DNA from: Prasinococcaceae sp. CCMP 1430
Lineage: Eukaryota > Plantae > Prasinodermophyta
NCBI GenBank assembly: GCA_013416795.1
Contig: RQSC01000002.1
Span: 575,801-639,800, forward strand
Length of the DNA stretch: 64,000 bases
Direction of reading: 5' to 3'
Shown here piece by piece: positions 13,855-64,000 of the stretch. The first letter of the stretch is position 1; the number at the start of each line of letters is the position of its first letter. The position numbers and the translations under genes were made by a program. The notes under the pieces are model-generated. The model did no database searches. It was not told where the DNA came from and saw nothing but the letters and a program-made list of their open reading frames with translations.

Positions 13855-16042
13855 GGCGGCCGCCGCGCGGGCGCGTGTGGTGCGCTGCTCGGGAGCGGCG
13901 GCGGCTGCGCGGCCTTTGAGGCCGTGGGTGGAGTCTCCAGGAGGTGGGCGAGGGCGTGGGCCAGAGCGGCGCTTCGGCCATGGCGTCCGGTGGCGGTGGC
14001 GACTTTCACAGCTCAAGCTATCAAGCGGCGAAGATAGCGCTGCTCATGGAGCCCGAGAAGCGGCTGGGGCTCGACGAGTGGAAGGAGAAGAAGGAGGAGG
14101 ACGCGCGCGCGCGAATGGACGACGCGGAGGCGCAGATGGAGGCGTACAAACGCGAGCTCGAGCGCGACCGCGAGCGCCGCCTCGCGCGCGGCGTGAACCA
14201 CCGCGACCTCGCCGAGAAGCAGAAGGAGAAGGACCGCGAGCGCGAGCGCCGCCACAGGAAGGAAAAGAAGCACAGGCGAGAGCGGCACAGGCACCGCGAG
14301 CGCGACGCGCGGGGGCAGAGCGACAGCGACAGCGACGACAGCCGTGAGCGCCGGCGTCATAGGAAGTCGCACAAGAGCGACCGCGACCGTGATCGCAGGG
14401 ACCGCGACCGCGACCGCAAGGACAGGCACCGCAGCGGCCGCGACCGCGACCGCGACCGCGGCAGCGACCGCGGCAGGGACAAGCGCGGCGGCGACGGCGA
14501 CGGCCCCGGCGGCGGCGACCAGCCCGTGCGCCTCTCCGACTTCATCAACGCCGCCGCGGACGACGCGTAGAGCGCCCGCTGGCCGGCCCTCTCGCCCGCC
14601 GGCCAGCCGGCCGGCCGCCCGCCTGGCCACCCCTCCTCTCGGGAGCGAGCGCGCGCCCCTCTCATTTTTATTTTTTTTATTTCTGCATTTTCCGCCGCGT
14701 TTTTGTGCGGCCGGCGGCCCGCCTTCGACGCCGCCATCAAAACGCACCCTGAGCGCGCCATTCGGCGACGACCACGGTCTGACGCTAGGGTTATGTCCAA
14801 AGCATCCGATGTCGCGCACTGCATACCCGGTTCGACAAGTCTGGACCGGTGTTCAGACCGGGTTCGTGACCGCGCGCGAATTCGAACCGCAGTCGCCTTG
14901 TCGGCGGCGAGCGGCAGCGGCTCGCCAGGGGCCCCCACGCCGGCGCCGCCCCGCCACCTCGCGCGCCTGGCTGCGCCGGGGGGGAGGGGTGGAGAGGGCG
15001 GGAGGGCGGGCGTCGCACATCGCACGCGCGCGCCGCTGGCACACTGATGTTCCGCTCCGCCCATGCAAAAGCCGTTTGTCCGTTCTGTCTATACGAGGCC
15101 GAGGCGCGCGCGCGCGGAGTGTGGCACCCCCATCAAACAAAAACAAAATCAAAAGAAAGAACGGACGCAACAAAACACATCACAAAATTCGAAATAAAAA
15201 AAAGGCGAGGCGTGCGCCGCACCGCGCCACAACGCGCCCGGCTGCCAGGAAGGCGGACGAGGGGGGGTGGGTGGGGGGAGACGGAGGTCCGAGTCGGGGT
15301 GGCGGGGCGGCGGCGCGCTCCGCTCGCACGCGGGGTGGGTGGGGAGTCGATCGGCGCGCGGGAATCTTTCGGGGCCGAGGCTCGGACCCGGCGGCCGCCG
15401 CGCGGGCGCGTGTGGTGCGCTGCTCGGGAGCGGCGGCGGCTGCGCGGCCTTTGAGGCCGTGGGTGGAGTCTCCAGGAGGTGGGCGAGGGCGTGGGCCAGA
15501 GCGGCGCTTCGGCCATGGCGTCCGGTGGCGGTGGCGACTTTCACAGCTCAAGCTATCAAGCGGCGAAGATAGCGCTGCTCATGGAGCCCGAGAAGCGGCT
15601 GGGGCTCGACGAGTGGAAGGAGAAGAAGGAGGAGGACGCGCGCGCGCGAATGGACGACGCGGAGGCGCAGATGGAGGCGTACAAACGCGAGCTCGAGCGC
15701 GACCGCGAGCGCCGCCTCGCGCGCGGCGTGAACCACCGCGACCTCGCCGAGAAGCAGAAGGAGAAGGACCGCGAGCGCGAGCGCCGCCACAGGAAGGAAA
15801 AGAAGCACAGGCGAGAGCGGCACAGGCACCGCGAGCGCGACGCGCGGGGGCAGAGCGACAGCGACAGCGACGACAGCCGTGAGCGCCGGCGTCATAGGAA
15901 GTCGCACAAGAGCGACCGCGACCGTGATCGCAGGGACCGCGACCGCGACCGCAAGGACAGGCACCGCAGCGGCCGCGACCGCGACCGCGACCGCGGCAGC
16001 GACCGCGGCAGGGACAAGCGCGGCGGCGACGGCGACGGCCCC
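13855..16042. repeat. 653-bp direct repeat (13855-14507 = 15390-16042), period 1535
   Basis: Copies look identical by eye; copy 1 starts right after N13854 and copy 2 ends 8 nt before the gap at 16051. Confidence 0.92.
13980..14570 (+). CDS. FAM133-like Arg/Asp-rich nuclear protein (copy 1)
   Basis: FHSSSYQAAKIALL...DEWKEKK...YKRELERDRERRLARG, RD/RE low-complexity tract, and C-terminal PVRLSDF, similar to plant FAM133-like proteins. Confidence 0.65.
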   Translation: MASGGGGDFHSSSYQAAKIALLMEPEKRLGLDEWKEKKEEDARARMDDAEAQMEAYKRELERDRERRLARGVNHRDLAEKQKEKDRERERRHRKEKKHRRERHRHRERDARGQSDSDSDDSRERRRHRKSHKSDRDRDRRDRDRDRKDRHRSGRDRDRDRGSDRGRDKRGGDGDGPGGGDQPVRLSDFINAAADDA

Positions 16043-16050
16043 ACCCGCCC
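15515..16050 (+). CDS. FAM133-like protein, copy 2 (truncated by gap)
   Basis: Same translation as copy 1 until the last few codons before the N-gap. Confidence 0.55.
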
Positions 16051-16408
16051 NNNNNNNNNNNNNNNNNNNNNNNNNNNNNNNNNNNNNNNNNNNNNNNNNN
16101 NNNNNNNNNNNNNNNNNNNNNNNNNNNNNNNNNNNNNNNNNNNNNNNNNNNNNNNNNNNNNNNNNNNNNNNNNNNNNNNNNNNNNNNNNNNNNNNNNNNN
16201 NNNNNNNNNNNNNNNNNNNNNNNNNNNNNNNNNNNNNNNNNNNNNNNNNNNNNNNNNNNNNNNNNNNNNNNNNNNNNNNNNNNNNNNNNNNNNNNNNNNN
16301 NNNNNNNNNNNNNNNNNNNNNNNNNNNNNNNNNNNNNNNNNNNNNNNNNNNNNNNNNNNNNNNNNNNNNNNNNNNNNNNNNNNNNNNNNNNNNNNNNNNN
16401 NNNNNNNN
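16051..16408. other. Assembly gap (N run)
   Basis: Run of N. Confidence 1.
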
Positions 16409-16594
16409 GCCGGCGACGCGCGGGGGGAGAGGGCGCGCGCGGCGCGCAGGCCCCAGCCGGTCGGGCGCTGATCGCGGCGGGGCGTGGCTGCAGGGCCCTC
16501 CGTCGGGGCGAGTGCGCCACAGCCGCGGCGGGTGCGCCGCCGCGGCGGCGGGAGCGGCTGGATCCGAAGCGGGAGTGCAGGAGGGGCTTCTGCG

Positions 16595-16783
16595 ATGGCG
16601 ACCGCCCCGGCGAAGCGCAGTCCGCTCGGCGCAGCCATGTACCGCATGCGTGTGTCGCTCGCGCTCAACATGCTCAGCCCGAGCGAGGAGGTGTTGTTTT
16701 ACTGTGCGGTGCTGCTCGTGGTGGGGCTGGTGGGCGTGGGCGCATTCCACGTACTCGCATACGCAGCGCTGCACCTCATCTGA
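16595..16783 (+). CDS. Serine palmitoyltransferase small subunit (ssSPT/SPTSS family), 62 aa
   Basis: MYRMRVSLALNMLSPSEEVLFYCAVLLVVGL aligns by eye with ssSPT IYLYNVTFGLYMLDWWERYLFNSLVV (shared Y...V..L.ML...E..LF followed by a TM helix). Confidence 0.7.
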   Translation: MATAPAKRSPLGAAMYRMRVSLALNMLSPSEEVLFYCAVLLVVGLVGVGAFHVLAYAALHLI

Positions 16784-16885
16784 TTGGCAAGTAGCGAGGC
16801 AGGTGCTCAACGGGCGGCGCGGCGGCGTGACGAGCTCGATCTCCGAGCGCTCGGCGCGCGGGTAGCTGTGGTAGCGAGGGAAAAG

Positions 16886-18647
16886 ATGGGCAAGGATGGT
16901 GGCAATGGAAAGAAGCGGAGGAGGGCGAGTGGCGGCGCGGCGGGCGACCCGGCTGGATCGGCTGCGCCAGCTGAAATCGTGCTCGAGGCGGGCGATCGGC
17001 TCGCTCTCGACGGCGCGGCGAAGCTGACGTTGCTGGATGGCGCTATTGACGTCGGCGGGTACCGACTGCACGCTCGCGGCGCCCAGGTCGACGTCGTGGG
17101 CGCGGCCGGCTGCGCGTGCGGTGCGCTGCTAGAGCACGTTGGCTCGGCAGAGGTGCCGAGGGCGGCCGCTGAGGTGGCGCGCCTGCGCGTGGCACCGTGC
17201 GCGGACGCTGGCGCGCGTGCGCCTCGCGTGCTGCGCGCTGGAGCCATCCAGTCGGCGTGCGCGGCCGCGCGCGCACCCGACGCGTGGCGCGCTGCGATTA
17301 GCGAAGTCGTGCGCGCTGTGGCCGCCCGCGATGCGGGGGCGCCGGCACCCATCGTCGCCGTCGCGGGGCCGAAGGGAGCCGGCAAGTCGACATTCGCGAG
17401 GTGAGGGCTTCTCGCGCGCTTTGCCCGCCGCGCCCCTCGGCTGCCGCGCTGTGCTTTGCGCTTACACCCTATGCATGGTTGTGCGCTGAGCTGACGGCCC
17501 GGTGCGTAGGTTGCTCGCCAACGCGCTCCTCTCGCGTGGTGGTGGGGGCGGAGCCGGCGGCGGGAGCGGCATGGCGACTGCTGCCGATGCGCCTGTCGCC
17601 TACTTGGAGGCGGACGTCGGCCAGTGCGAATTCACACCGGCAGGGCTGATCGCACTGCACGTGCTGCGCGGGGGCTCGCCACTCACCGGCCCGCCGCACG
17701 CGCACCTACGCGCGTGGCGCCGTGCAGCCTTTTACGGCGATACCTCCCCTAAGGCCGACGCGCGCGCACTTCCGGCGGCCGTGGCCATGCTCGCCGCCGA
17801 GGCGCGCACGCAGCTCGCAGGCGTGCCACTTGTCGTGAACACGTGCGGCTGGGTCACTGGCGCGGGCCTCGACATCCTCAGCGATACACTGCGTGGGGTG
17901 GCGCCAACGCACCTCGTGTCGCTTTGCCCGACCGGCGGTCGCGCCGTACTACCGCGCGGGGCCTTCTGGCTCGAGGAGGACTCGTCTGATGGCGTACGTG
18001 CTTCGGCGACTTGCCGCGTGCTCGACCTGCCGGCGCTACCGGCACCGGCGGTGGGCGCCGGCGGGAGCTGGCAGGCGGCCGACGCGCGCGCGGCGGCGGC
18101 GCTGGCGTACTTCCACGCTCCAATGGCGCACGTAGACGATGCGGGGATGCCTGCGGCTTCGATGGGGGCGGCGACAGCGCTGGCGGAAGCCGTACCATAC
18201 GCGGCCCCGCGCGCGGCCCTGGGCGTGGTCTTCCTGCACGCCGAAGTGCCCCCTGAGCACGAGGCGACAGTGCTGAACGGCGCGCTGGTGGGGCTCGCTC
18301 GACCGTGGCAGGGCACCGAGGGCGTGCACGCGTATGCGCATGGCTGGCCGAAGTACGAGTGCCTAGCGCTCGGCGTGGTGAAGGCGTACGACCCCGCGCA
18401 CGGCGGTGTGGTTTACGTGCACACCCCCGCGCCTCCCGAGACGCTCGCGACTGCGACCGTGCTGCTGCACGGCCGCGTTGAGCTGCCCGCGTCTGCCTAC
18501 ACGCCACCCGGCATGCGCGCGGCGTATGTGCTGCCGCACGCCATCTCAACTGAGGGTGTGGGCGCCGCGCCGCAGAAGGCGCGCAACAACCTGCAGCGGG
18601 GCGGAGGCGGCGCGGGCGCCGCGCAGCAGCAGCCTGATGCGATCTGA
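16886..18647 (+). CDS. NOL9: Polynucleotide 5'-hydroxyl kinase NOL9/Grc3; intron 17401-17509; 550 aa
   Basis: GPKGAGKSTFAR|LLAN joined across a GTGAG..TAG intron; YLEADVGQCEFTPAG; PLVVNTCGWVTGAG; ECLALGVV; C-terminal RNNLQR. Confidence 0.9.

Positions 18648-19842: not shown

Positions 19843-19883
<41 letters not shown>
19843..19883. repeat. (CA)n microsatellite abutting gap
   Basis: About 20 CA units. Confidence 0.95.

Positions 19884-20736: not shown

Positions 20737-20792
<56 letters not shown>
20737..20792. repeat. (GT)n microsatellite
   Basis: About 28 GT units between convergent genes. Confidence 0.95.
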
Positions 20793-34318: not shown

Positions 34319-34593
34319 CGTCGGTCGTGCGACGTGCCAATTCCGGATCCAATCACCGCTCACATTCGATTCGGAGGGCGCGGACCGTCGATCGGCGCGG
34401 GAGTCGCGAGGATCTTTTTCCCGCGTCTGAGGACAGACTGCTGCGCTGCGAGGCACCGTCGGTCGTGCGACGTGCCAATTCCGGATCCAATCACCGCTCA
34501 CATTCGATTCGGAGGGCGCGGACCGTCGATCGGGGCGGGCGTCGCGAGGATCTTTTTCCCGCGTCTGAGGCCAGACTGCTGCGCTGCGAGGCA
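34319..34593. repeat. Tandem duplication, 2 x 138 bp, in a divergent intergenic region
   Basis: Copies start at 34319 and 34457 and differ at about 3 positions; each contains two CCAAT. Confidence 0.92.
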
Positions 34594-44512: not shown

Positions 44513-47500
44513 TTACGCCGGAACGCACCCAGGCTGGTTGCACCAGTTCCAAGCCAGAATATCATGCGTCTCGTGCACCTCCTCCGGGTCGAAGCCCTGC
44601 TTGGCGAAGCCCTTGGAGCCCGTGGAGGCGGTGAAACCCACGTAGGCGTTGCCGTCTGTGTCTAGGATCTTGGCCATGTCGCGGTCCTCGACGGCCACCT
44701 GGAAGACGAAGCGGTCCATGTCATCGATGAAGACCTGGAGCTCGCCGGGGAACTCCTTGATGATGTTGTAGTCGATCTCGTTGTCCTGTTTCGGCTCGAA
44801 GGCGGGCATCATGGTGATGCGCACCTCGCGCTCCTCAGCAGTCGCACCGGCAGTCTCGGTGTCCTCGAGGTTGGCCTCGTCGTCGTCAATGACCTTGATC
44901 ACGCGGCAGACCTCCCCGTCGTCGCCGAAGCCCGTGGTCGCGACAGGCGGGGCCTGGCGGCACGCGTGGTGCGTCTCGCAGGTGATGTCGCGGTTGACCT
45001 TGATCTTGGCGTTGGCCTTGACGCGGTTCGCGTAGCCGAACTCGTAGCCCGTGCGCAGCTCTGCCTTGAATCGCGTGAGGTGGTTGCCCTTGAGGCGGCG
45101 GCGATCGCCGTCGGCGGTCACGATGTCCGTCGTGGTGATCTTGCCCGAGCCCTGCTTCTCGGTGGTGAAGCCGCGGGTGTAGCGGATCTTGACGGTGTGC
45201 TCCTGGAAGTCAGCGAGCGTAGGCACGCTCGGCGTCGAGCCGAAGTGCGCACCGTTTTCGTCGTCCGAATGGAGCGCCTTAAGCATCGGCTGCGAGGCGC
45301 CCCACGGCTGGTGCGCGTACTTGGGCTCGGTGGTCATGAAGACGCCCAGGTGGTTGTCGTTGTACGAGACGTACTCGGTCGCGTTAATCCACCAGTGCTG
45401 CTTGCCCTGCTTGGGGTCACGGCGCTCGACATTGTAGAACGTGTCGAACTCCACCGCTAGCGCCTTCTTGAGGCCGTGCGGGCACTCCTCCCAGTTGCCA
45501 AAGTAGTTGACGGTGTTCGACTTTTTCGAGTTCGAGTAGCCCAGGCCGTCGGACGGGCAGCCCATGAGGGCGCCGTCGCTGCCGTCGAAGCTGCACGTGC
45601 CATGGACGCCGTTGTCGTAGTCGGCGCCCGGGCAGTCGAACACGCCATCCTCTTGACGGTCGTCGTTGGTGATGACGAAGGCAAAGCCGTCCGCGCCGTC
45701 ACAGATCTTGTCCTCGCCGCCGCACTGCGAGGGGTCGGTGATCTGGAAGACGAAGTTGGTCTCGAAGCCGTCCCAGATGTGCAGCTTGCGATGCCACCAC
45801 ACGGCGCCCGAGCGCTGCGCGTCGGGGTACGACGCGCCGCCCGCGTCGCGCCAGCGAACGAAGGCGTTGTTCTGGCGCTTGCGCGTCTCGGTGAGGCGCA
45901 CCACCCACTGCGGCGAATCGGCCGAGTTGAGCACCACATCGGCGTCGCGAACGAAGCGCAGGTTGTTCTGCACGCACATCGACTTGTGCGAGGCGTCGGC
46001 GAAGCCCGACACGTTCTTGGCGCCCTTACCCGAGTCCTCGCACTCGAAATCAGGGAAGTTGAACTCAAGGTAGAAGCGCGCGGTGTACTCCGACGAGCCC
46101 ACCGTTTGCGGGTAGCGGTTGTCGCCCATCACGCCGGTCACCCACCTCTCGCAGTTGGGCTCGAAGCTCTCCTGAATGTAGTGACCCAACGATGTGCTGT
46201 ATGCCGTGCCGCCCGCGCCGCCGAGCACCGACTTGTCGAGCGTGTCGGTGAGGCACGCGAAGTCGTACTCGTCCTCGTCGATAGCCCACGGCACCGACTC
46301 GCGCACTGACGTCAGGTGGTAGTTGGTGGTGTCAGGGCGGCCCGAGCCGTCGTCGTCGCGGCGCGTGTACAGGTCGATGTTGTCGTTCACGGTGTGCACG
46401 GCGATGCGGAAGTTGTAGTTCGAGTGGTCGGGCTTGACATAATAGTACGCGAACTGCTGCGGCTGAACCACCGAGCTCACCTTGAACCCGCAGCAGCCGG
46501 GGTCCACCTCGCAGTACTTGTACGACCAAGTCTGATAGAAGGTGTGCTCAGGGTGCGGCAGGTACGCGAGCGGGTGCTCGTCGGGCACAATGTCCTCGTA
46601 CGGCGGAAGGCGACCCACCGTCGTGGTGTCGCCCAGCGAATCGGTGTGCCCGACGCCGCCACGCTTGCCGGCCGCGCACTTGAGGATCTGGTAGTTCCGC
46701 GCGGTGCTCGTCACGCTGCTCAGGCGCGAGTCCGACACGAGCGACGTGTCCGACAGCACGCGCACCACGCGGATGTCGTAGTCATCGCTGCCGCCCAGCG
46801 GATCGAGGAGGCGAACGATGTCGCCTGGGCTGACGTCCGAGGTGAATTTGGCGTCGCGGTTGGAGTCGTCCGGATCGGGCGCCGAGGTGAGGAGCATCGT
46901 ATCGGCGTCCCACTCGACGAGGCCCGGCGCGGTCAGCTTCGGACGGTACGAGGCCTCGGCGATGGTGGTCGCGTCCGTGGTGATCGACATGCACTTGCCG
47001 TGGTTGTAGCACACGGGCGGGTTGGCGTTGTCGTCAGTCAGGAAGCGCTCGCCTGTCGCGGTGCAGCGCACGTGCGCATCACGGGTCAGCGACAGGAACG
47101 GAGGCCGAGCGCGAGAGGAGGCCGACGGGATCGGTCGCTTGCCTCAGTAATCGTTTCTCAAATTGTCGACACACTTTTTTGGCTGGCAGGCCATTCAGTC
47201 GCAAATTACCATTTTGTATGACATCTCAGGCAGGTGCGGGCGCAGCGGTGCATGTCCGGCACACGGCACCAAAGCGCGGAACGCGACGCACAGCAGCACG
47301 CAGAGGAGCAGCAGGGCGGCGCCTCAAGCACGCGCGCCAGCACAAGCGTCGCCGCGCAAGACGCACCCTCGGTCGAGAAGTAGTACTCGCAGTTCTCGAT
47401 GTCGGCGACGTGCAGGCGCCACGAGTCGTACGCGGTGAAGTGGCCCGAGGTGGCGACGGCCGTGGCGTCCCACTTGATGTACACCCCGAACGCCTTCTGC

Positions 47501-49939: not shown

Positions 49940-50083
49940 ACACACACACACACACACACACACTTGCACGCACACACGCACACGCACACGCACACACACC
50001 ACACGCACACACACACGCACACGCACATGCACACAAACTCACACACGAAGATGCACGCACACGCACACGCACACACACACACA

Positions 50084-50124
<41 letters not shown>

Positions 50125-50150
50125 ACGCACACATGCGCACGCACACGCGC
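49940..50150. repeat. Compound (CA)n/(CACACG)n microsatellite
   Basis: Seen directly in the sequence. Confidence 0.95.
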
Positions 50151-50581
50151 ACCGCGCCCGCGCCGCGCGGCGCGCGAGTGGCGCCACGGCCGTGGCCTGC
50201 TGCGCGCATGCAGGCTCGCGCCCACGCGCGAAAGCGCAACAAAGGAAAAAGAGGAAGAAAACGAACCCCAAACACGTACGGCGGTCTTTAGGGTACGTGC
50301 CTGCGACTTCGGCGCCCATTACGTTCTAAGTGATGAGAGAAATGAAAACGGGTTTGCGGATTCGCGTATCGCCTTTGATTTTGATGTGTTCGGCAACGGC
50401 GGGGCGCAGGCGGGCGGGAGGAGGGGCGCCGCGGGGGAACGGACTGCGGGAGCGCGCGAAGAGGTGCGCGGCGCGCGGCGCGGGGCGCGCGCCACAGCAG
50501 CCACGGCGCGCGCGCGCACGCCCAGCCTTCCCCCATCCAACCCCACCACCCTTCTCCCGGGCGCTCGTGGCCGCAGCAGCC

Positions 50582-51653
50582 ATGATGGACCCCTCGGAAG
50601 CGGTCACCGCGATCGCCGTGGCGGGCGAGGACGTCGAGGAGCTCAAGAAGGCCATCGCCGACGCCGCCTTCCTCGACGGCCTGCCGGGGCACGCGAGGCA
50701 GCGGCTGCGCGGTGCGCAGCGCGCCGAAAAAAAAAAGGGAGGGGGGAAAACGGCACGCGAATTCGGGGCGAGCGGCTCCCGTTGTGTGCGCGCGCACATG
50801 CAGGGCGCGCGGGCGGGCGCGCGAATCCGCGCGCAGCCGCGAAACGGCACGGAAAAAAAAATGCGGCGCGCCGCGGGCGCGCGAACAGGCGCGCGCGTGC
50901 GGACGCGGACGCGGACGGGCGCGCAGGCGCCTGCGCGCGAAGTGGCGCGCGTGGCGCGCGCTGTCGCCCGGCCCGGAGGACCGAGCACGCGGCCATGCGC
51001 TCTCACCCTGCTGACGCGTGGCGGCGATGCCTATGCACCCCGCGGTTCGCGCTCGCATCACGCAGCTGCGCGTGGCCTCTTGCGCCGGCTGGAGCGCGGC
51101 GGCTCGACGCTCAAGGTGAAGGCCGAGAAGGCCAAGGAGCAGGAGGCCTCCAACCCGCAGACCAAGCAGGACATCCCGCCTGTCACGTATGAATTCATTG
51201 ACCTTGAGGAGAGCAAGGCAAAGTATGACATCGAGAAGTTCGACGAGAAGTGGGAGGGGCTCGAGAAGCTGCGCTGGCGCATGGTCCAGATGCCCGGTGG
51301 CGCCATCAAGAAGCCTGACGCCTTCTACTGGCTCTACGGCCTGGGCATGCAGGCCACGGAGGGTGACAATGACACCGAGAGGCCCATGTGGGCGGAGAAG
51401 GGCGGCCTCGACTTCGAAGGCCGTGCGCGTTGGGACGAGTACGAGGGCCGCAAGGGCATGGACCAAGAGGAGGCCAAGCAGAGATTCGTCGAGTTTTTCG
51501 AAGCCGGATACGACCCAAAGAAGTGTACGTCCCCGCGCGTCGTTGGCAGCATGAGCACAGCCAGGGCCGCCGCGCGTGCGTGCCGTCGCTGCGCGCGAAG
51601 GGCGCTAACGCGCGCGCACTCAACTTGCTATCACAGGCCTCTACCAGTTCTGA
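50582..51653 (+). CDS. Acyl-CoA-binding domain (ACBP) protein with N-terminal extension; introns 50712-51065 and 51525-51636; 201 aa
   Basis: LYGLGMQATEGD...RP....DFEGRARWD...KGMDQEEAKQRFVE. Both introns are phase 1 with GCTGAC/GCTAAC branch points; spliced CDS is 606 nt and ends KKCLYQF. Confidence 0.85.
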
Positions 51654-51789
51654 GTCTGCGGAGCGTGCTGCGTGGACACCCCAACGCACAAATATTAGTG
51701 TGCCGACGCACGCGCTCTGTGTAATTGTCATGAGCTGTGCGCGGCGTAGCACAGTACCGACCCTTCGCTCGCGTGCACCGCCAAGTGCA

Positions 51790-53466
51790 TCACACCGTTG
51801 CGACCAGTCCAAGCCTGTTCACCCATGCGCTCAGCGGCGTGTCCCGTTGTGGCATCGTCGCTGCCATGCGCCCCATGGGATGAGCGGGCGCAAGGAGCTC
51901 AACGTTCGCGAGACAGTGCGCGAGCCACTGCCCCACTGGTCGTGCGATTTCGGCACCTCGGCTGGCCGTTGGATCTGCGACTGTGATACCTGCTGGCGCA
52001 GTAGCTTCCAGCAGCTGTCGACACATCGCCAAGCTGCCATCCCCCGTGACGTTGGCATCACGGGCCAGGGCGTTCGTGGCTGACGCCCTGAAGAGAGCCT
52101 CGGCTGTTCGCTCCAGGGCAGCGCTGAGGGATCCGAGCGCTGGTGGAAGCATAGATGCGTCGTTGATACGCGCGGCAGCAACGCCCTCCACGCCGCTGCT
52201 CTCAGAGGGATGCTCTGAGCGTGCGCCATGCTCAAGCTGACCCGCAAGCTCACAGAGCGGCCACGGGAGCACGTCGCAGAGCTGGTGTGCGCCAATAAGA
52301 CCATCCGTTGGGCCGACGTTTCCGCGCAGACCGAGTGCCGTACCTCCTCCCATCGCGTAGCGACTGCTCCCGCGCACACTGGAAACCGGAGGAGGACAAC
52401 CACCATCAGTCTGGATGCGCCCTTCGTTCAGTCCGAGCGCATTTAGGCTCACCAGAGGGCGCCGGTAAGCCCACACAGGGAAGAGCGGCGGGTCAAAGAG
52501 AGGCACGCTTTCGCCGATGCCAGTGCTACTGCCGCCGCCTGCCGCGCGGCGATGGCGGCGTGGGCCAGTCGGTTGTTGCTCGCGCTCCAATGCGCGCAGA
52601 TGTGTCAATGCTCGCATCTCCTCGAGTGCCATGGCACCGCCACCCGCACATCGCGCCGCCGCCGCGAGAGCTGCAACCGCCGATCTGTTTGGCAGACGCT
52701 GTGGCGCGTCGGTCGCGACGGGCATAGCCGCCACAGCATCGGAGCGTACCGCCGAATCGGTACCGCCCACCTGCCAAATGACCGCCGAGTGACCCTTCAC
52801 CTCCAGCGCCTCTGTCAGCACAGCTCCTATAGACAAAAATGAACCGAGCTTCCTGAGCTCGGCAACTTCTGCTGACGCGACGGCAGCGGGAATGTCCCCT
52901 CCCATGCGCGCGTTAGCCACCGCTGCCTGTCGCGACAGTCCCTCTGGTGTCACGGGGACGAGCAAGCTGTCTCTGGCGACGGTGGCGGTGCCATTGTCGC
53001 GGCGATTTCCTCCCTCGCCCAAGGCGGCAGCGATGGCGCGCCGTGCACAGGTCAGCAGCTGCAATTCCTTCTCGCCTTGATCAGACTCTCTGCTGCCGTC
53101 GATGGCGAGAGCAAGCATCCAAGCCCCAGGGGCGGACGCCTCCGCGGCCACCGCGAACGCCGCGAGCGCTGCTGCAACAGACGCATCTTCGCCCCGGCAT
53201 GAGGCCGGGGGCAGCGCGCGCCCAGCGTGCCCCACGCCACCCATGACGGTATACGCAACACCCACGAGCACAGCGCCGCCCCTCACTCGGCCCTTTGCCA
53301 GGCGCGCGAGCGCTGCCGCGCCCTCGTCCTTCCGAGGGCTTGTCAGCGCTCCCGGCGCACCGCTCACGCCTGCCACCTCGGCCCGGGCCGCCGCCGCCGC
53401 CGCCGCCGCTGCCGCTGCCACCAGAAGCAGCAGCGCCACAGCCGCTGCTGGAGAGACCCGGTGCAT
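51790..53466 (-). CDS. Hypothetical secreted or membrane-anchored protein, 558 aa
   Basis: Uninterrupted ATG-started ORF with a signal-peptide-like N-terminus (VALLLLVAAAA). No family recognised. Confidence 0.55.
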   Translation of the reverse strand: MHRVSPAAAVALLLLVAAAAAAAAAAARAEVAGVSGAPGALTSPRKDEGAAALARLAKGRVRGGAVLVGVAYTVMGGVGHAGRALPPASCRGEDASVAAALAAFAVAAEASAPGAWMLALAIDGSRESDQGEKELQLLTCARRAIAAALGEGGNRRDNGTATVARDSLLVPVTPEGLSRQAAVANARMGGDIPAAVASAEVAELRKLGSFLSIGAVLTEALEVKGHSAVIWQVGGTDSAVRSDAVAAMPVATDAPQRLPNRSAVAALAAAARCAGGGAMALEEMRALTHLRALEREQQPTGPRRHRRAAGGGSSTGIGESVPLFDPPLFPVWAYRRPLVSLNALGLNEGRIQTDGGCPPPVSSVRGSSRYAMGGGTALGLRGNVGPTDGLIGAHQLCDVLPWPLCELAGQLEHGARSEHPSESSGVEGVAAARINDASMLPPALGSLSAALERTAEALFRASATNALARDANVTGDGSLAMCRQLLEATAPAGITVADPTASRGAEIARPVGQWLAHCLANVELLAPAHPMGRMAATMPQRDTPLSAWVNRLGLVATV

Positions 53467-53926: not shown

Positions 53927-55112
53927 TCATGCGACCCGCGCCCCGCCCTGCGCGGCCTCCTCGTCCTTTGCAAGCGCACTCCACATGAGGGCCGCCCCGG
54001 CCGCGTTCACAAGGCCGAGGAGCAGCAAGCCGCTCTCCACGGCCCCACGCGCGACCAACACTCCGAACGCCATGAAAATGCCCAGCCTGCCTACTACCGT
54101 GGATTGGTAGAACGCTCGGAGGCCATCCGCGTCGCGGCGCCCCGCGCCGATGTAGTAGCAGCCGAAGGCGCAGCACAGCACGCCAAACACCTGTATCCAT
54201 CCCTTGGCTATCGTGGAGGTGCTGAAGAGCATACCAAATGTCTTGAGCGGCGCGAAGAGCAACGCAAGGCCAGCAGCAGCGATGTACGCCCCCGTCAGCA
54301 GCGACGCCCGTGCGGCGTTGCGGTCGGGGCGACCGGACGACCGCCTCATGGCCGCCTCCGCGGACACTGCGCCGTCGCCGCCGAGCCGCTGCGATGGCGA
54401 GCACGTGGGCCCGTCAGCGATACGTCTGCATGGCAGGGCGCCCGCGGCGCGCGAGGCGCCGGCTAGCTTACCTGGGCCGCAGGGGCGATTTCGATTGCGC
54501 CGCCGCCGCCAATGGACGCCACCTCCGCGCCGCTAGCGACCTGCACGTCCTCGTCATCGTCGGGCCCGTACGCGACACTGCCCGCGATACGCAGCATGCT
54601 CGGTTGCATCTGAAGCGCAGCAATGATGCAGCTCTCGTCGCCGTACACGCCCGCCGTAGCCTCCCCACGTAGGCGGCCCCACACGTACACATCGCCGCCG
54701 GCGGTCACCGCGGCTGTCGCCCCGAGCCAGGAAACGGGACAGAGGAAAGGTGCGGGGGCACGCGGCCAGCACAGGTCAATACATCGAATTGCTTGTCAGC
54801 GGGCGCGTCTGGACACCGCCGTCGCGGGGCGCTCGCAGAGGCGGTGGTGTGCGTTGAACAGAGGGGCGCGCGTGCAGGCGGGCGGGCGCACGTGGGGGTG
54901 GGGTGGACGGGCTTGGGGCCCGGAGGCTGCAGGCCCGCGATTGCCGCACCGTTGGTGTTCACATCCCCATATATGATCAGGTCGCCCTCGGCGCTCTCCG
55001 TCTGCCCCCCTCGCAGCGTGCGCCGCACGACGCGCGCCGGCAGGCGGCGCCGCGGACGGCGCCGGGGGCGCGGACGCGGACGCGGGGATCGAAGCGGCGG
55101 ACAGGAAGCCAT
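53927..55112 (-). CDS. minC: MinC C-terminal domain fused to a 4-TM membrane domain; exons 55112-54950, 54713-54472, 54388-53927; 288 aa
   Basis: Spliced VVRRTLRGGQTESAEGDLIIYGDVNTNAAVTAGGDVYVWGRLRGEATAGVYGDESCIIAALQMQPSMLRIA matches the MinC_C beta-helix consensus. Both introns are GT..CAG and keep the frame (867 nt total). Confidence 0.85.
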
Positions 55113-55141
55113 ACGTGCATCCCGCGGGCTTCACGCCGTGG

Positions 55142-56068
55142 ATGAAGGCCGACGTGCTGCCGCTGCTTGCCGAGGGCATGGAGGCCGTGCTCGCCGAGGC
55201 GGGCCGGTATAAAGCGCGGCTCGTGGACGGCAGCGAGTTCCCCGACGGCTACAGAGACCCCGAGTGGGCGCCGTGGGACCCGGTGGAGTGGCTCGCGAGG
55301 TGGTTGCGCGAACACAATCCGCGACGCGTGCGGCCGCCACCGACGCCGCCCCCCCCCGAGAGACTTCCGGTGGACAAACTCGAGTACGAGGACCTCACGC
55401 GCGACGAGAAGCTGCAGCTGTGCTTCATGTTCCTCGACAAGGACGGCGGTGGCTCCCTGGACATGGAGGAGGTCATGGTCCTCGCCGAGGTAGCAGGCGG
55501 CTTCAACCCTGCTGACGCGGAAGGGGCGCTCGCAAAGGCCAGGGAACAGCTGATCGCAATGGACACCGACGGCGACGGCCTGGTGGACGAGGGAGAGTTC
55601 GTGGCCGCTATGCGGACGATACTCGAGCCGTTGGACGACGCGGAGTACGACAAGGCCGTGCGCGGCGTCCTCAGCAAGAAGCTCTACGCCGACATGACCA
55701 AGGAAGAGAAATACGACCTGTGCTTTCGGCAACTCGACCGCGACAACTCGGGCGGCGTGACGATCGAGGAACTCGCGGCCTTTGGCAGCTCGGTGTCGGG
55801 CGTGGAAAACTTGGACGACGCAGTCTTGGAGACGCTGGAGGCGCTCGATGCCGACGGGAGCGGCTCAGTGGAGCGCGAGGAATTTCACATGGCGCTCGAG
55901 GAGATCACCGCTGGGCTCAGCCAAGAAGACTTCGAAGAGGCGCTCAAGAGGTTGTTCGACGTCTTCACGGCGGGTGCGGACGCGCGGCGAAACAGGGCCG
56001 CTGGCAGCGGCAAATCCGCCGTCGAGGAGGCGCTCGAAGGCATCCAGGACGGGACACTGGTGGCTTGA
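55142..56068 (+). CDS. Four-EF-hand protein with N-terminal DPY30/RIIa-like dimerisation motif (possibly axonemal)
   Basis: VLPLLAEGM...DPVEWLARWLREHNP; EF loops DKDGGGSLDMEE, DTDGDGLVDEGE, DRDNSGGVTIEE, DADGSGSVEREE. Confidence 0.8.
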   Translation: MKADVLPLLAEGMEAVLAEAGRYKARLVDGSEFPDGYRDPEWAPWDPVEWLARWLREHNPRRVRPPPTPPPPERLPVDKLEYEDLTRDEKLQLCFMFLDKDGGGSLDMEEVMVLAEVAGGFNPADAEGALAKAREQLIAMDTDGDGLVDEGEFVAAMRTILEPLDDAEYDKAVRGVLSKKLYADMTKEEKYDLCFRQLDRDNSGGVTIEELAAFGSSVSGVENLDDAVLETLEALDADGSGSVEREEFHMALEEITAGLSQEDFEEALKRLFDVFTAGADARRNRAAGSGKSAVEEALEGIQDGTLVA

Positions 56069-60757: not shown

Positions 60758-63635
60758 TCACACGTCCTCCGATGCGTGCGCGGCTGCCACCGCGGGCAAG
60801 TGGTGGCGCGTGTCGGGCGGCTCTTCCCCCTCCCCAACGAGAAGCGTGGTGCGAATCTGGCACGGACCGCGATTGGGAAAGACCGCGTGAAGCTCCACGG
60901 TACAGTGGTCGAGAATGCGCAGTGTTCGCCCGCCGCCTGCCGGCCCTCCGGTGAGCGTAACCGTGAACTTGTCAGGGTCGTGCGCAGCTTGCAGGTCGGG
61001 GTGGATGTCATCCAGGTAACACCTGCTCTCGATGGAGTAGTGCGGCAGGAAGACGGAGATGAACTTCGAGCCAACAGAGACGATCAGCCCGTCGGTGTAG
61101 CGGTTGACGCCACCCTCGCCGACCCTCGCAACGCGCGGGTCGCCTTCCTTGCCGGCATTCAAGAGCAGGCACAGATAGAGGCGCTCGGAGGCCTCTTGCG
61201 CCATTTTGGCAGCCTCCTTGCGCTCGTTGCAGCGCGAGGCTTGCCGGTCGGCGTCCTCGCACTCATAGAGCTGCCACTTAGCGATGGCGGCCTCGTGGTC
61301 CTCCACAGCACCCGCGCGAATGTCGAGTGCTGCGGCTAGCATCCTGTGCACAACCACATCCGCGTAGCGCCGGATGGGACTGGTGAAGTGCGTGTAGCGC
61401 TCCATGGCGAGCGCGTAGTGTGGCCAGTCCGCCTCGATGGCCATGCCACAGCTGAAGTACATCGCGAGCTGCATGGGCTTGGTGGCGAAGTGCACGAGCA
61501 CGTCCGCAAGCCCCTGGTCACGGTACGTCTGCCGCGCCTTCTGCAAGCTCTCGTGCAGCGACTTTGAGGTACGCGTATCGACGCTAAGGCCGTGCTTGGC
61601 CGCGAAGGACGCCAGATCACCGAGCTTCTTCTTGTCGGGCGGTGGGTGGCGGCGCAGAAGCGCGCGGTCGGGGAACTCCTCCGCGATAATGCGCGCCACG
61701 GACCTATTTGCGAGCAGCATGAACTCCTCCACCAGCTGGTTCGCCTCGTTGGTTTTGTAGTGGTGTGCCGCCGTGGGCTGGCCCGTCTCGTCAAGCTTGA
61801 AGCCGAACTTCACCCGATGGAGGGCGAGCGCGCCGTCGGCGAAGCGCTTCCTGCGCAGCTGCGAGCCGATCCGCCACAGCGCTTTGACGTCGTGGGCCAC
61901 GTCGTTCCACGTGACCCCGTTGTGAAGCTCCGGCAGCTTGATGTCGCCCTCGTCCGGCGGCAGCCCCTGCATGAGGTTGTAGGCATTCTGGTACGCGAGC
62001 TGGCCGCACGAGCGTATGATGGAGCGGCCGGCCCACTCGTTGTGAATGTTGCCCTGCTTGTCGAACTCCCACGTTATCGAGAACGCCAGGCGGTCCACGC
62101 CCGGCTGCAGCGAGCACAGATGCTCGCAGAGCGGGCGCGGCAGCATCGGAATGACGCCGTCGATGAGGTACGTGGAGGTCGAGCGCTCAGCGGCCTCCGC
62201 ATCGAGCGAGGTGCCGGGAACAACATAGTGCGTGACGTCGGCGATGTGCACACCTACCTCGGTGCGGCCATTGGGCAGCTCGCGGATGGACAACGCGTCG
62301 TCGAGGTCGCGCGCGGTGGGCGGGTCGATCGAAGTGATGCGCCACTCGCGCAGGTCACGGCGCGGCGCGTCGAGTGCGCCGCCGGGCGCACTCAGGTTAA
62401 CGTTTGTGAGCGCCTCGCCCTGCGGCAGGTCCTCAAAGACCTCCGGAGGAAACTCATTTGACGGCACGTTGAACTCGTGCAAGATTGCCGCCGTCTCCGC
62501 CTCGAGCGATCCCACGCGCCCCAGCACGGCGGTCACAGTCGCCATGGGCATCTGGCTGAACTCCGACCACTGCGAGAAATGACCGGCAACCTTCACGCCC
62601 TCGGAATACTCGTGTAGGCGCCCGCTTCCCTCCGGCGTGCGACCGGGCCGAGGCGCTCCACCGCCACCACCGCCACCCCCCCTGCCGCCCGCCCCGCCTC
62701 GCCCGCCGCCGCCCCGCCTTTTGTCCTTCTTGCCATCATCCAACGCATCGTCGCCGAAGGGCGTTGCCTTGGCTGGCACGAAAAAGTCGGGGAACTTCTG
62801 TTCGGACGGGTAAAGGACGAACCCACCGCCACCGCCACCCTTAGCGCGGCGCAGCGTTCCCACCAGCCTTTCACGCCGCGGGGAATCTTTAGCGATGGCG
62901 ACCACGCGCGCCCATGGCCGCAGGTTGCGCACCTCGCAAACCTTCGCAATCTCCTCGGCGGACATCGGCGGAGGGAGCGGCTCCGCGTCCTCGCCTTCGG
63001 GTATCTCTTCCTCCTCGCGCTCGTCGTCGCGACCGCCCGGTCGCCCTCGGCCGTTCGCGTCCTTGCCGTCTGGCCGCCTCCACTCGCTCACATCGAGCAG
63101 CACGTACACGACCTCGTCGGCCTCGATCGCACGATTCTGCCGACGCAGGCCCTGCACGAGAACGTCATGAGGCACTCCCTTGAGCGTGATGTACGCCTCG
63201 CGGCGGTTGTTCGCGTTCATTCGAATGCGTCCCACGCGTGCCTCGCCGCTCTCCAGCGCGGCCGCCACGCGCTCCTTGCTCCAGTGTGGTGGGTACCGCC
63301 GCCGCGGCCCGGCACGCGCGCTGCCCTCCGCAGCCTTTCGCGCGTCGGACATGCGCGCGTACTGCTGCGGCTGCGCGCCCCGGCCACCCCCGCCTGCAGC
63401 CCCCGCAGCGGCGGCGGCCTCGCGCTGCGCTACTTGATCCTGCACGAGAGGGTCATCGCCATAGCGGTCCGGCTGCCGCGGAGGCGTTTTGTCGCGCGCG
63501 CGGGGCGCGCCTCCTCCGCTGCGCCCTCCTGCGCTGCCGCGGCCACGCCCGCCGCGGCCACCTCTGCCTCCGCTGCCGCTGCTAGCGCCAGCGGCACGGC
63601 CAAGTGCGCCCGCCGCCGCCGCCGCCGCCGTCCAT
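60758..63635 (-). CDS. DIS3L2: DIS3-like exonuclease 2 (RNase II/RNB family); start uncertain
   Basis: YPPHWS..V...L, GRIRMNANNRREAYI, QNRAIEAD, SIDPPTARDLDDALS, VGVHIADV, LVEEFMLLAN, YTHFTSPIRRYAD; no PIN domain. Confidence 0.92.
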
Positions 63636-64000
63636 GGCGCGCGCGCGGCCGGCCAACCCCGACCCCACCGCCTATCAGCCCCTCTCCTCCCTTCTACGTC
63701 GCCTTGGCGCCCCTCTCGCGCCCCCCAGACCCACCACCACCCCGGCAGGCCCCGCCGCAACGTGTGGCGGCGCGCGGCGCGCGCGCCGGCTCTGTTCGTA
63801 CGCACGCGCGCGTCCCCGCCAGATCACAACAATCTGTCATTATTGGCTACCGTGGGTGCATGTGACGTAGATCTTCACATTACATACGCGCACGTGTACG
63901 CGCGCGGGTGCGCTCGCTGCTCGCACGCGCGCCGCATGAGCGTGTGCGTGTGCGTGTGCGCGCGTGCGGGCGTGCGACACTGGGCGCGTGCGGCGCGGCC

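Follow-up and report, generated by a model that had tools for sequence, protein, structure and literature searches.

A three-exon nuclear gene of Prasinococcaceae sp. CCMP 1430 encodes a MinC C-terminal domain joined to a conserved four-helix membrane domain

The DNA analysed here is a stretch of 64,000 nucleotides (nt) from the green alga Prasinococcaceae sp. CCMP 1430 (assembly GCA_013416795.1, contig RQSC01000002.1, positions 575,801 to 639,800 of the forward strand), referred to below as the window. On its minus strand lies one nuclear gene of three exons, encoding a MinC C-terminal domain (MinC_C) followed by a membrane domain with four transmembrane helices (4-TM domain; Table 1). The exons contribute 163, 242 and 462 nt, which add up to 288 codons and a stop in a single frame. 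An in-frame stop (55133-55131) sits 21 nt upstream of the start codon. The GC content at the third codon position is 0.80-0.82 in each of the three exons, and in intron 1 the three positions give 0.72/0.72/0.72, i.e. no codon periodicity. This exon/intron structure is established. A sequence-only reading of the same DNA had spliced three open reading frame (ORF) fragments into a 288-residue frame through canonical introns; its coordinates proved exact, and the GTAAGC donor and the GCTGAC motif that it described in the phase 0 intron 2 are both present, the latter as CGCTGAC.

Relatives of the gene were searched for with single exons, each on its own, and they bear on both junctions. Contig L005, from the Tara marine metagenome, carries an orthologue that is about 60% identical in protein sequence across exon 3. 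A single uninterrupted frame of this contig holds both the stretch matching exon 1 residues 28-54 and that matching exon 2 residues 1-21, with exactly one Ala codon separating the two, and the ORF product P0002 runs unbroken from '...GAEVAS...', at the end of the MinC_C region, into the exon 3 match from its first residue. L005 reads through both junctions of the window because its own introns lie at other positions. The leader encoded by exon 1 of the window is not conserved in this contig. The closest relative found, L003, has about 80% identity. Its similarity to the window begins, for DNA and protein alike, exactly at the predicted acceptor of intron 2, and a CTGAC motif stands at the same distance upstream of the acceptor as in the window. 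Judged by these sequence comparisons, both splice junctions are confirmed, with an agreement far beyond chance. The L005 orthologue likewise has two introns, one following EATAG and the other GPEE. That a pair of genes about 60% identical should use four intron positions points to rapid intron turnover in the lineage. A CTGAC-type motif is found near the acceptor in all introns of the window gene and of the L005 orthologue.

The N-terminal half of the protein is a bona fide MinC C-terminal domain. Exon 1 residues 28-53 match the Pfam MinC_C profile (PF03775) over positions 1-26 (E 8e-4), and exon 2 matches positions 30-92 (E 2.5e-15, 56.7 bits against a cut-off of 33.2). The two matches are thus collinear across intron 1, as expected of a phase 1 intron inside one domain. 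The motifs listed by the sequence-only reading were all found in the translations, with TLRGGQ and GDVN in exon 1 and GDVYVWGRLRGEATAG and LRIA, followed by an acidic stretch, in exon 2; its description of the MinC_C domain as complete agrees with the two Pfam matches. NCBIfam MinC models also match exon 2, with E values down to 8e-15. Among solved structures, the best match of exon 2 is PDB 4v02_C (E 2.4e-9), the MinC C-domain of Aquifex aeolicus in the MinC:MinD complex. An AlphaFold2 model of the full-length homologue P0003 (predicted local distance difference test score, pLDDT, 88.9) superimposes on 4v02_C with a root-mean-square deviation of 1.0 A at 48% identity (E 3.7e-12), followed by the MinC structures of Thermotoga, Pseudomonas and E. 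coli.

The MinC N-terminal domain (MinC_N), by contrast, had been read as missing, and indeed no Pfam match to PF05209 or PF22642 was obtained in the window exons; only 27 residues precede MinC_C, with the in-frame stop upstream of them. The whole-protein equivalog cut-off of the NCBIfam/TIGRFAM model TIGR01222 (95.25) is missed by exon 2 alone (50.1 bits) and by the full-length homologue P0151 (94.2), and the scores of the PRK00513 models are all far under their cut-offs. Since MinC_C is present while MinC_N is lacking and the whole-protein equivalog scores fall short, the window protein is not a canonical MinC but a distinct, lineage-wide variant. Compared with the bacterial MinD-contact motif RSGQ, its RGGQ keeps R, G and Q, with S replaced by G. 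The core GGDV.VWG.L.G..AG, strongly conserved in all 45 fused proteins described below, is also kept in the window protein. In a word-based search, the bacterial MinC_C domains sharing most words with the green domain (P0256-P0363) reach up to 59% identity; those with names belong to Chloroflexota (Anaerolineae, Ardenticatenales, Chloroflexia, Sphaerobacter, Thermomicrobiales) and Firmicutes-like bacteria.

Exon 3 encodes four hydrophobic segments, at residues ~28-46, 63-83, 96-114 and 121-140; these, together with an Arg/Pro-rich leader and an acidic linker, had been described in the sequence-only reading, and all three elements were found in the translation and the hydropathy profile. The AlphaFold2 model of exon 3 (pLDDT 90.9) consists of four long helices (23-45, 62-83, 90-113 and 120-152). 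Pfam and NCBIfam scans assigned the 4-TM domain of the window to no family, and the same holds for that of the algal stand-alone and the bacterial proteins. A PDB profile search of exon 3 gave no significant match (best E 0.3), and Foldseek with the exon 3 model retrieved no significant PDB fold (best E 1.4) and no transporter-like fold. In the alignments, which extend from bacteria to plants, a Pro after TM1 and an Arg at the start of TM3 are invariant, while T-G-x-Y in TM1, a Trp before TM2, a Tyr in TM2 and an Asn in TM4 are near-invariant. Exon 3 of the window fits this family pattern (T-G-x-Y, Pro, Trp, Arg, Asn).

The 4-TM domain also occurs by itself. In Volvocales, stand-alone proteins of Chlamydomonas incerta, Volvox africanus and Astrephomene (P0041, P0049, P0037), annotated as 'hypothetical protein', combine a transit-peptide-like leader with the 4-TM domain and are without MinC_C. 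In bacteria, unannotated stand-alone proteins of about 120 residues (L008-L087) were found in Bacteroidota (Chitinophagaceae, Saprospiraceae, Runella), Burkholderiales (Massilia, Roseateles), Gemmatimonadota and Anaerolineae. The best 80 bacterial 4-TM loci include no cyanobacterial one, in a scan whose patterns were drawn from that bacterial subgroup. No conserved gene neighbourhood was seen at the 80 bacterial loci, the largest shared family being that of 8 loci of close relatives. The metagenomic protein P0061 is a tandem double of the 4-TM domain. On the strength of its sequence conservation, the 4-TM part is a conserved domain family of its own and not the generic anchor for which the sequence-only reading had taken it.

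The fusion itself is widespread. An exhaustive HMMER search with exon 3 of 1.84 billion representative proteins yielded 366 homologues at E<1e-3, and a MinC_C match (exon 2) lies directly upstream of the membrane domain in 38 of the first 150 exon 3 matches. At least 45 fused proteins with MinC_C and the 4-TM domain were collected. Named sources are the liverwort Riccia fluitans and the algae Pycnococcus provasolii, Chloropicon roscoffensis, Cymbomonas tetramitiformis, Tetraselmis striata, Myrmecia bisecta, Raphidocelis subcapitata, Mesostigma viride, Chlorokybus, Klebsormidium nitens and Mesotaenium endlicherianum. All named eukaryotic members are Viridiplantae. In the aligned fused proteins, PF03775 is found in 45/45 and PF05209 or PF22642 in 0/45, and the N-termini are non-conserved leaders. 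A separate homologue search with exon 3 alone yielded nothing beyond the ORF call of the window itself and two close relatives.

A quick maximum-likelihood tree of the membrane domain places the window sequence with P0001 (95) and with the P0002 group (96). Together these are sister (Shimodaira-Hasegawa-like approximate likelihood ratio test, SH-aLRT, 85) to a clade of 34 rows from marine samples, 30 of which are fused. Tree support is moderate because the tree rests on a short domain. The spread of the fused proteins and the placement in the tree indicate orthology between the window gene and a protein conserved in Viridiplantae. The fusion of MinC_C to a 4-TM domain proposed from the sequence is real, being read through in L005/P0002 and repeated with the same domain order in homologues, but it is not peculiar to this locus: found across chlorophytes, streptophyte algae and one liverwort, it is the standard, conserved build of 'MinC' in the green lineage. 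As the fused build is general there, what the literature records as 'partial MinC-like sequences' probably represents whole proteins with this architecture. The gene itself is an additional member of a family present in databases, some entries of which are already named MinC, while the family architecture and the independent 4-TM domain family look undescribed.

Next to the gene, on the plus strand, lies a divergent neighbour, a separate gene for an EF-hand protein with a weak Dpy-30 motif, which limits any upstream extension of the MinC gene. The window as a whole has a G+C content of 60-73% and is dense with long ORFs. Two of these are long and single-exon, one encoding an RNB/Rrp44-like exoribonuclease and the other a protein with legume-lectin domains; such eukaryotic ORFs support a compact, intron-poor nuclear genome. 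No tRNA genes were found in the 64-kb window. Repeats and compositional features are listed in Table 1; outside the two regions given there, AT skew is near zero.

Table 1. Position and basis of the features of the MinC gene and of its surroundings in the window
Feature	Position	Strand	Basis or description
Exon 1	55112-54950	-	ATG at 55112; 54 codons + 1 base; leader and first MinC_C beta-strands
Intron 1	54949-54714	-	236 nt, GTGCGG..GACAG, GT..AG, phase 1
Exon 2	54713-54472	-	remainder of the MinC_C beta-helix, then start of acidic/Gly-rich linker
Intron 2	54471-54389	-	83 nt, GTAAGC..CGCAG, phase 0; CGCTGAC branch-like motif 26 nt before acceptor
Exon 3	54388-53927	-	end of linker, four-helix membrane domain, short acidic tail, TGA stop
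MinC_C domain span	54511..55031	-	interrupted by intron 1
RGGQ, counterpart of the bacterial RSGQ MinD-contact motif	55002..55013	-	exon 1 residues 34-37
Conserved 4-TM domain	53969..54307	-	exon 3 residues 28-140; hydropathy, AlphaFold2, conservation
TM1	54251-54307	-	hydropathy
TM2	54140-54202	-	hydropathy
TM3	54047-54103	-	hydropathy
TM4	53969-54028	-	hydropathy
EF-hand protein ORF	55115..56068	+	Pfam EF-hand_7, E 3.8e-19
RNB/Rrp44-like exoribonuclease ORF	60761-63805	-	RNB, E 7e-101
ORF of protein with legume-lectin domains	44516-47071	-	
Tandem repeat	34319-34593		138-bp unit, two copies, 97% identity
Microsatellite	49940-50152		long imperfect (AC)n, ~97 units
Dinucleotide runs	19843-19883 and 20737-20792		perfect CA/GT
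Strong AT skew	14001-16000		+0.33
Strong AT skew	50001-52000		+0.23
Low G+C	16001-18000		falls to 0.60

What the protein does may be considered against the bacterial system. The MinC C-domain dimerises and binds helix 7 of MinD through RSGQ, a surface for which MinE competes (PMC6803595, PMC5548801). Together with MinD, it inhibits division and blocks the lateral association of FtsZ filaments without the N-domain (PMC6803595, PMC5548801); in E. coli, MinC-N is not needed for MinC-C plus MinD to inhibit division (PMC6803595). The statement in the sequence-only reading that MinC acts on FtsZ through its N-domain is therefore incomplete: both domains inhibit FtsZ, MinC-C in a MinD-dependent manner (PMC6803595).

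On this basis, we lean, with some confidence, towards the protein being the Viridiplantae form of MinC in a green alga, an integral plastid-membrane protein of which the beta-helix dimer engages MinD and FtsZ. A variable linker connects the beta-helix to the membrane domain. The short basic leader (27 residues, rich in Arg and Pro and without acidic residues in the exon 1 translation) would presumably serve as an organelle-targeting peptide, and the protein would reside in the inner envelope membrane of the plastid or in the thylakoid. Averaged over the family, the flank before TM1 has a net charge of +1.9 and the loop between TM1 and TM2 of -0.2, which fits an N-in orientation; given the positive flank, MinC_C would lie on the positive side, stromal or cytoplasmic, and for a protein of the inner envelope or thylakoid membrane this should be the stroma. 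On that side, the beta-helix dimer may then bind ATP-MinD through its RGGQ face, with MinE competing for the same MinD surface, and the membrane-resident MinC-C/MinD complex could interfere with the bundling or anchoring of FtsZ filaments away from the division site. Since the protein is anchored on its own, it would, unlike bacterial MinC, have no cycle of membrane binding and release. We infer targeting, topology, binding partners and the effect on division from the comparisons given above.

Several observations weigh against this assignment. The leader is short, at 27 residues. The equivalent of the RSGQ motif is degenerate in many family members, with RGGQ in 6 of 45 and GDAE in Riccia, and MinD binding may thus not be universal. 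No named cyanobacterial MinC_C appears among the matches of the word-based search, in which Chloroflexota are closest among those with names, a result that lends no support to a cyanobacterial, and hence plastid, origin of the domain. The first ATG of the EF-hand ORF, at about 55142, is only some 30 nt from the MinC ATG at 55112, so either the two 5' untranslated regions must overlap or the 5' end of one of the models may be wrong. Lastly, a passive anchor would need far less conservation than the 4-TM domain shows, and this domain also occurs by itself in bacteria and algae; the main function may lie in it.

This last point leads to a different account, in which the 4-TM domain is the functional core and MinC_C a dimerising or regulatory appendage, the role being not Z-ring placement but e.g. 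plastid membrane organisation, transport or lipid handling. In its favour, the domain stands alone in leader-bearing Volvocales proteins and in bacterial ones of about 120 residues, bacteria and plants alike keep the invariant Pro and Arg and the near-invariant Trp, Asn, Tyr and Thr, and the MinD-contact motif is degenerate in many fused members. However, the conservation of the MinC_C core in 45 of 45 fused proteins argues for selection on MinC-type interactions, nothing about function can be read from the bacterial neighbours (no neighbour family is shared by more than 8 of 80 loci) and a transporter-like fold was not matched; we regard this account as rather unlikely, yet worth keeping in view. 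An organelle other than the plastid was considered as well. Mitochondrial MinC and MinD have been proposed in the stramenopiles Nannochloropsis and Ectocarpus (PMC3499364), an Arg-rich leader is equally possible as a mitochondrial presequence, and the nearest named bacterial MinC_C matches are not cyanobacterial. A mitochondrial Min system of this kind is nevertheless very unlikely here, as every named eukaryotic member is from Viridiplantae, a lineage in which we know of no mitochondrial FtsZ. Moreover, green-lineage MinC is listed among plastid-division genes (PMC4641359).

Least probable of all is that the locus holds two genes, i.e. a soluble MinC_C-only protein that stops in intron 2 (ORF 54708-54463) and an independent small membrane protein whose start is a Met or GTG inside exon 3. 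Against it stand the single frame in which P0002 of L005 crosses the junction, the conserved acceptor at which the similarity of L003 starts, the canonical GTAAGC..CAG sites with their CTGAC motif, dozens of single-polypeptide fusions in annotated eukaryotic genomes and transcriptomes, and the position of the window's exon 3 with the fused clade in the tree. ORF lists and prokaryote-style gene calls do split the pieces (P0226, 159 residues; P0001, 149 residues), and stand-alone 4-TM proteins exist in other algae. The split into P0226 and P0001 is, however, an artefact of prokaryote-style callers, since the collinearity of MinC_C, L005/P0002 and L003 support splicing.

Returning to the membrane-anchored plastid MinC, it can be placed in a wider, more speculative frame. 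Green-lineage MinC might have been rebuilt early as an integral membrane protein, by loss of MinC_N and fusion to a pre-existing bacterial-type four-helix domain, with the 4-TM domain as a new, active module that positions or regulates the chloroplast MinD/FtsZ machinery; loss of the whole protein in vascular plants would then be the event for which ARC3 and MCD1 compensate. We put this forward tentatively, as a scenario that is possible but doubtful.

In the usual account of chloroplast division, MinC was lost and replaced by ARC3. The proteins described here indicate that a MinC descendant persists in at least one liverwort as well as in chlorophytes and streptophyte algae, always in the same unusual form, without the FtsZ-severing N-domain and with a conserved membrane domain. 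If it works with MinD, the algal Min system would contain a membrane-resident inhibitor unable to oscillate by membrane release, and models of Z-ring placement for monoplastidic algae would change. The fusion also offers an initial way into the function of a bacterial family of four-helix membrane proteins that is widespread but unannotated, and raises a concrete, testable question on the working of the Min system in the chloroplasts of algae and bryophytes.

With regard to known genes, a MinC in Chlamydomonas (XP_001692722) and a MinC-like gene in the moss Physcomitrium are listed among plastid-division genes (PMC4641359, PMC2995336, PMC10030945). The database entries of Chloropicon roscoffensis ('septum site-determining protein MinC') and Klebsormidium nitens ('protein with septum formation inhibitor MinC domain') share both family and architecture with the window gene. 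In the searchable full-text literature (with subscription-only papers outside this scope), no mention of a membrane domain in green MinC, of the missing MinC_N or of a functional test was found. Vascular plants have lost MinC and use ARC3 (PMC4641359, PMC2995336, PMC10030945, PMC13650779), and for stramenopiles both MinC and MinD are predicted to be mitochondrial (PMC3499364).

The window protein shares with bacterial MinC (E. coli; Aquifex, 4V02; Thermotoga, 1HF2) the C-terminal right-handed beta-helix and has, in RGGQ, a candidate counterpart of their RSGQ motif. Unlike these, it is without MinC_N, has its own four-helix membrane domain, is nuclear-encoded and carries a leader peptide. The bacterial four-helix proteins of about 120 residues show homology to exon 3 across the entire domain, with the same conserved Pro, Arg, Trp and Asn, but they stand alone, without MinC_C, conserved neighbourhood or annotation. 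ARC3, the functional analogue of MinC in plants, matches the role proposed for the window protein, as a stromal-side negative regulator of Z-ring assembly together with MinD and MinE, but is unrelated in sequence. According to PMC13650779, it is a soluble stromal protein with FtsZ-like and MORN parts; no Pfam match to an FtsZ-like domain or to MORN repeats was found in any exon of the window gene. Similar in concept are MCD1 and ARC6, plant envelope proteins that recruit or position MinD, each an integral plastid-membrane link to the Min system. Both are single-pass proteins, host-derived or of the cyanobacterial Ftn2 type. They have no sequence relationship to the window protein, which instead is a fusion of MinC_C with a four-helix bundle.

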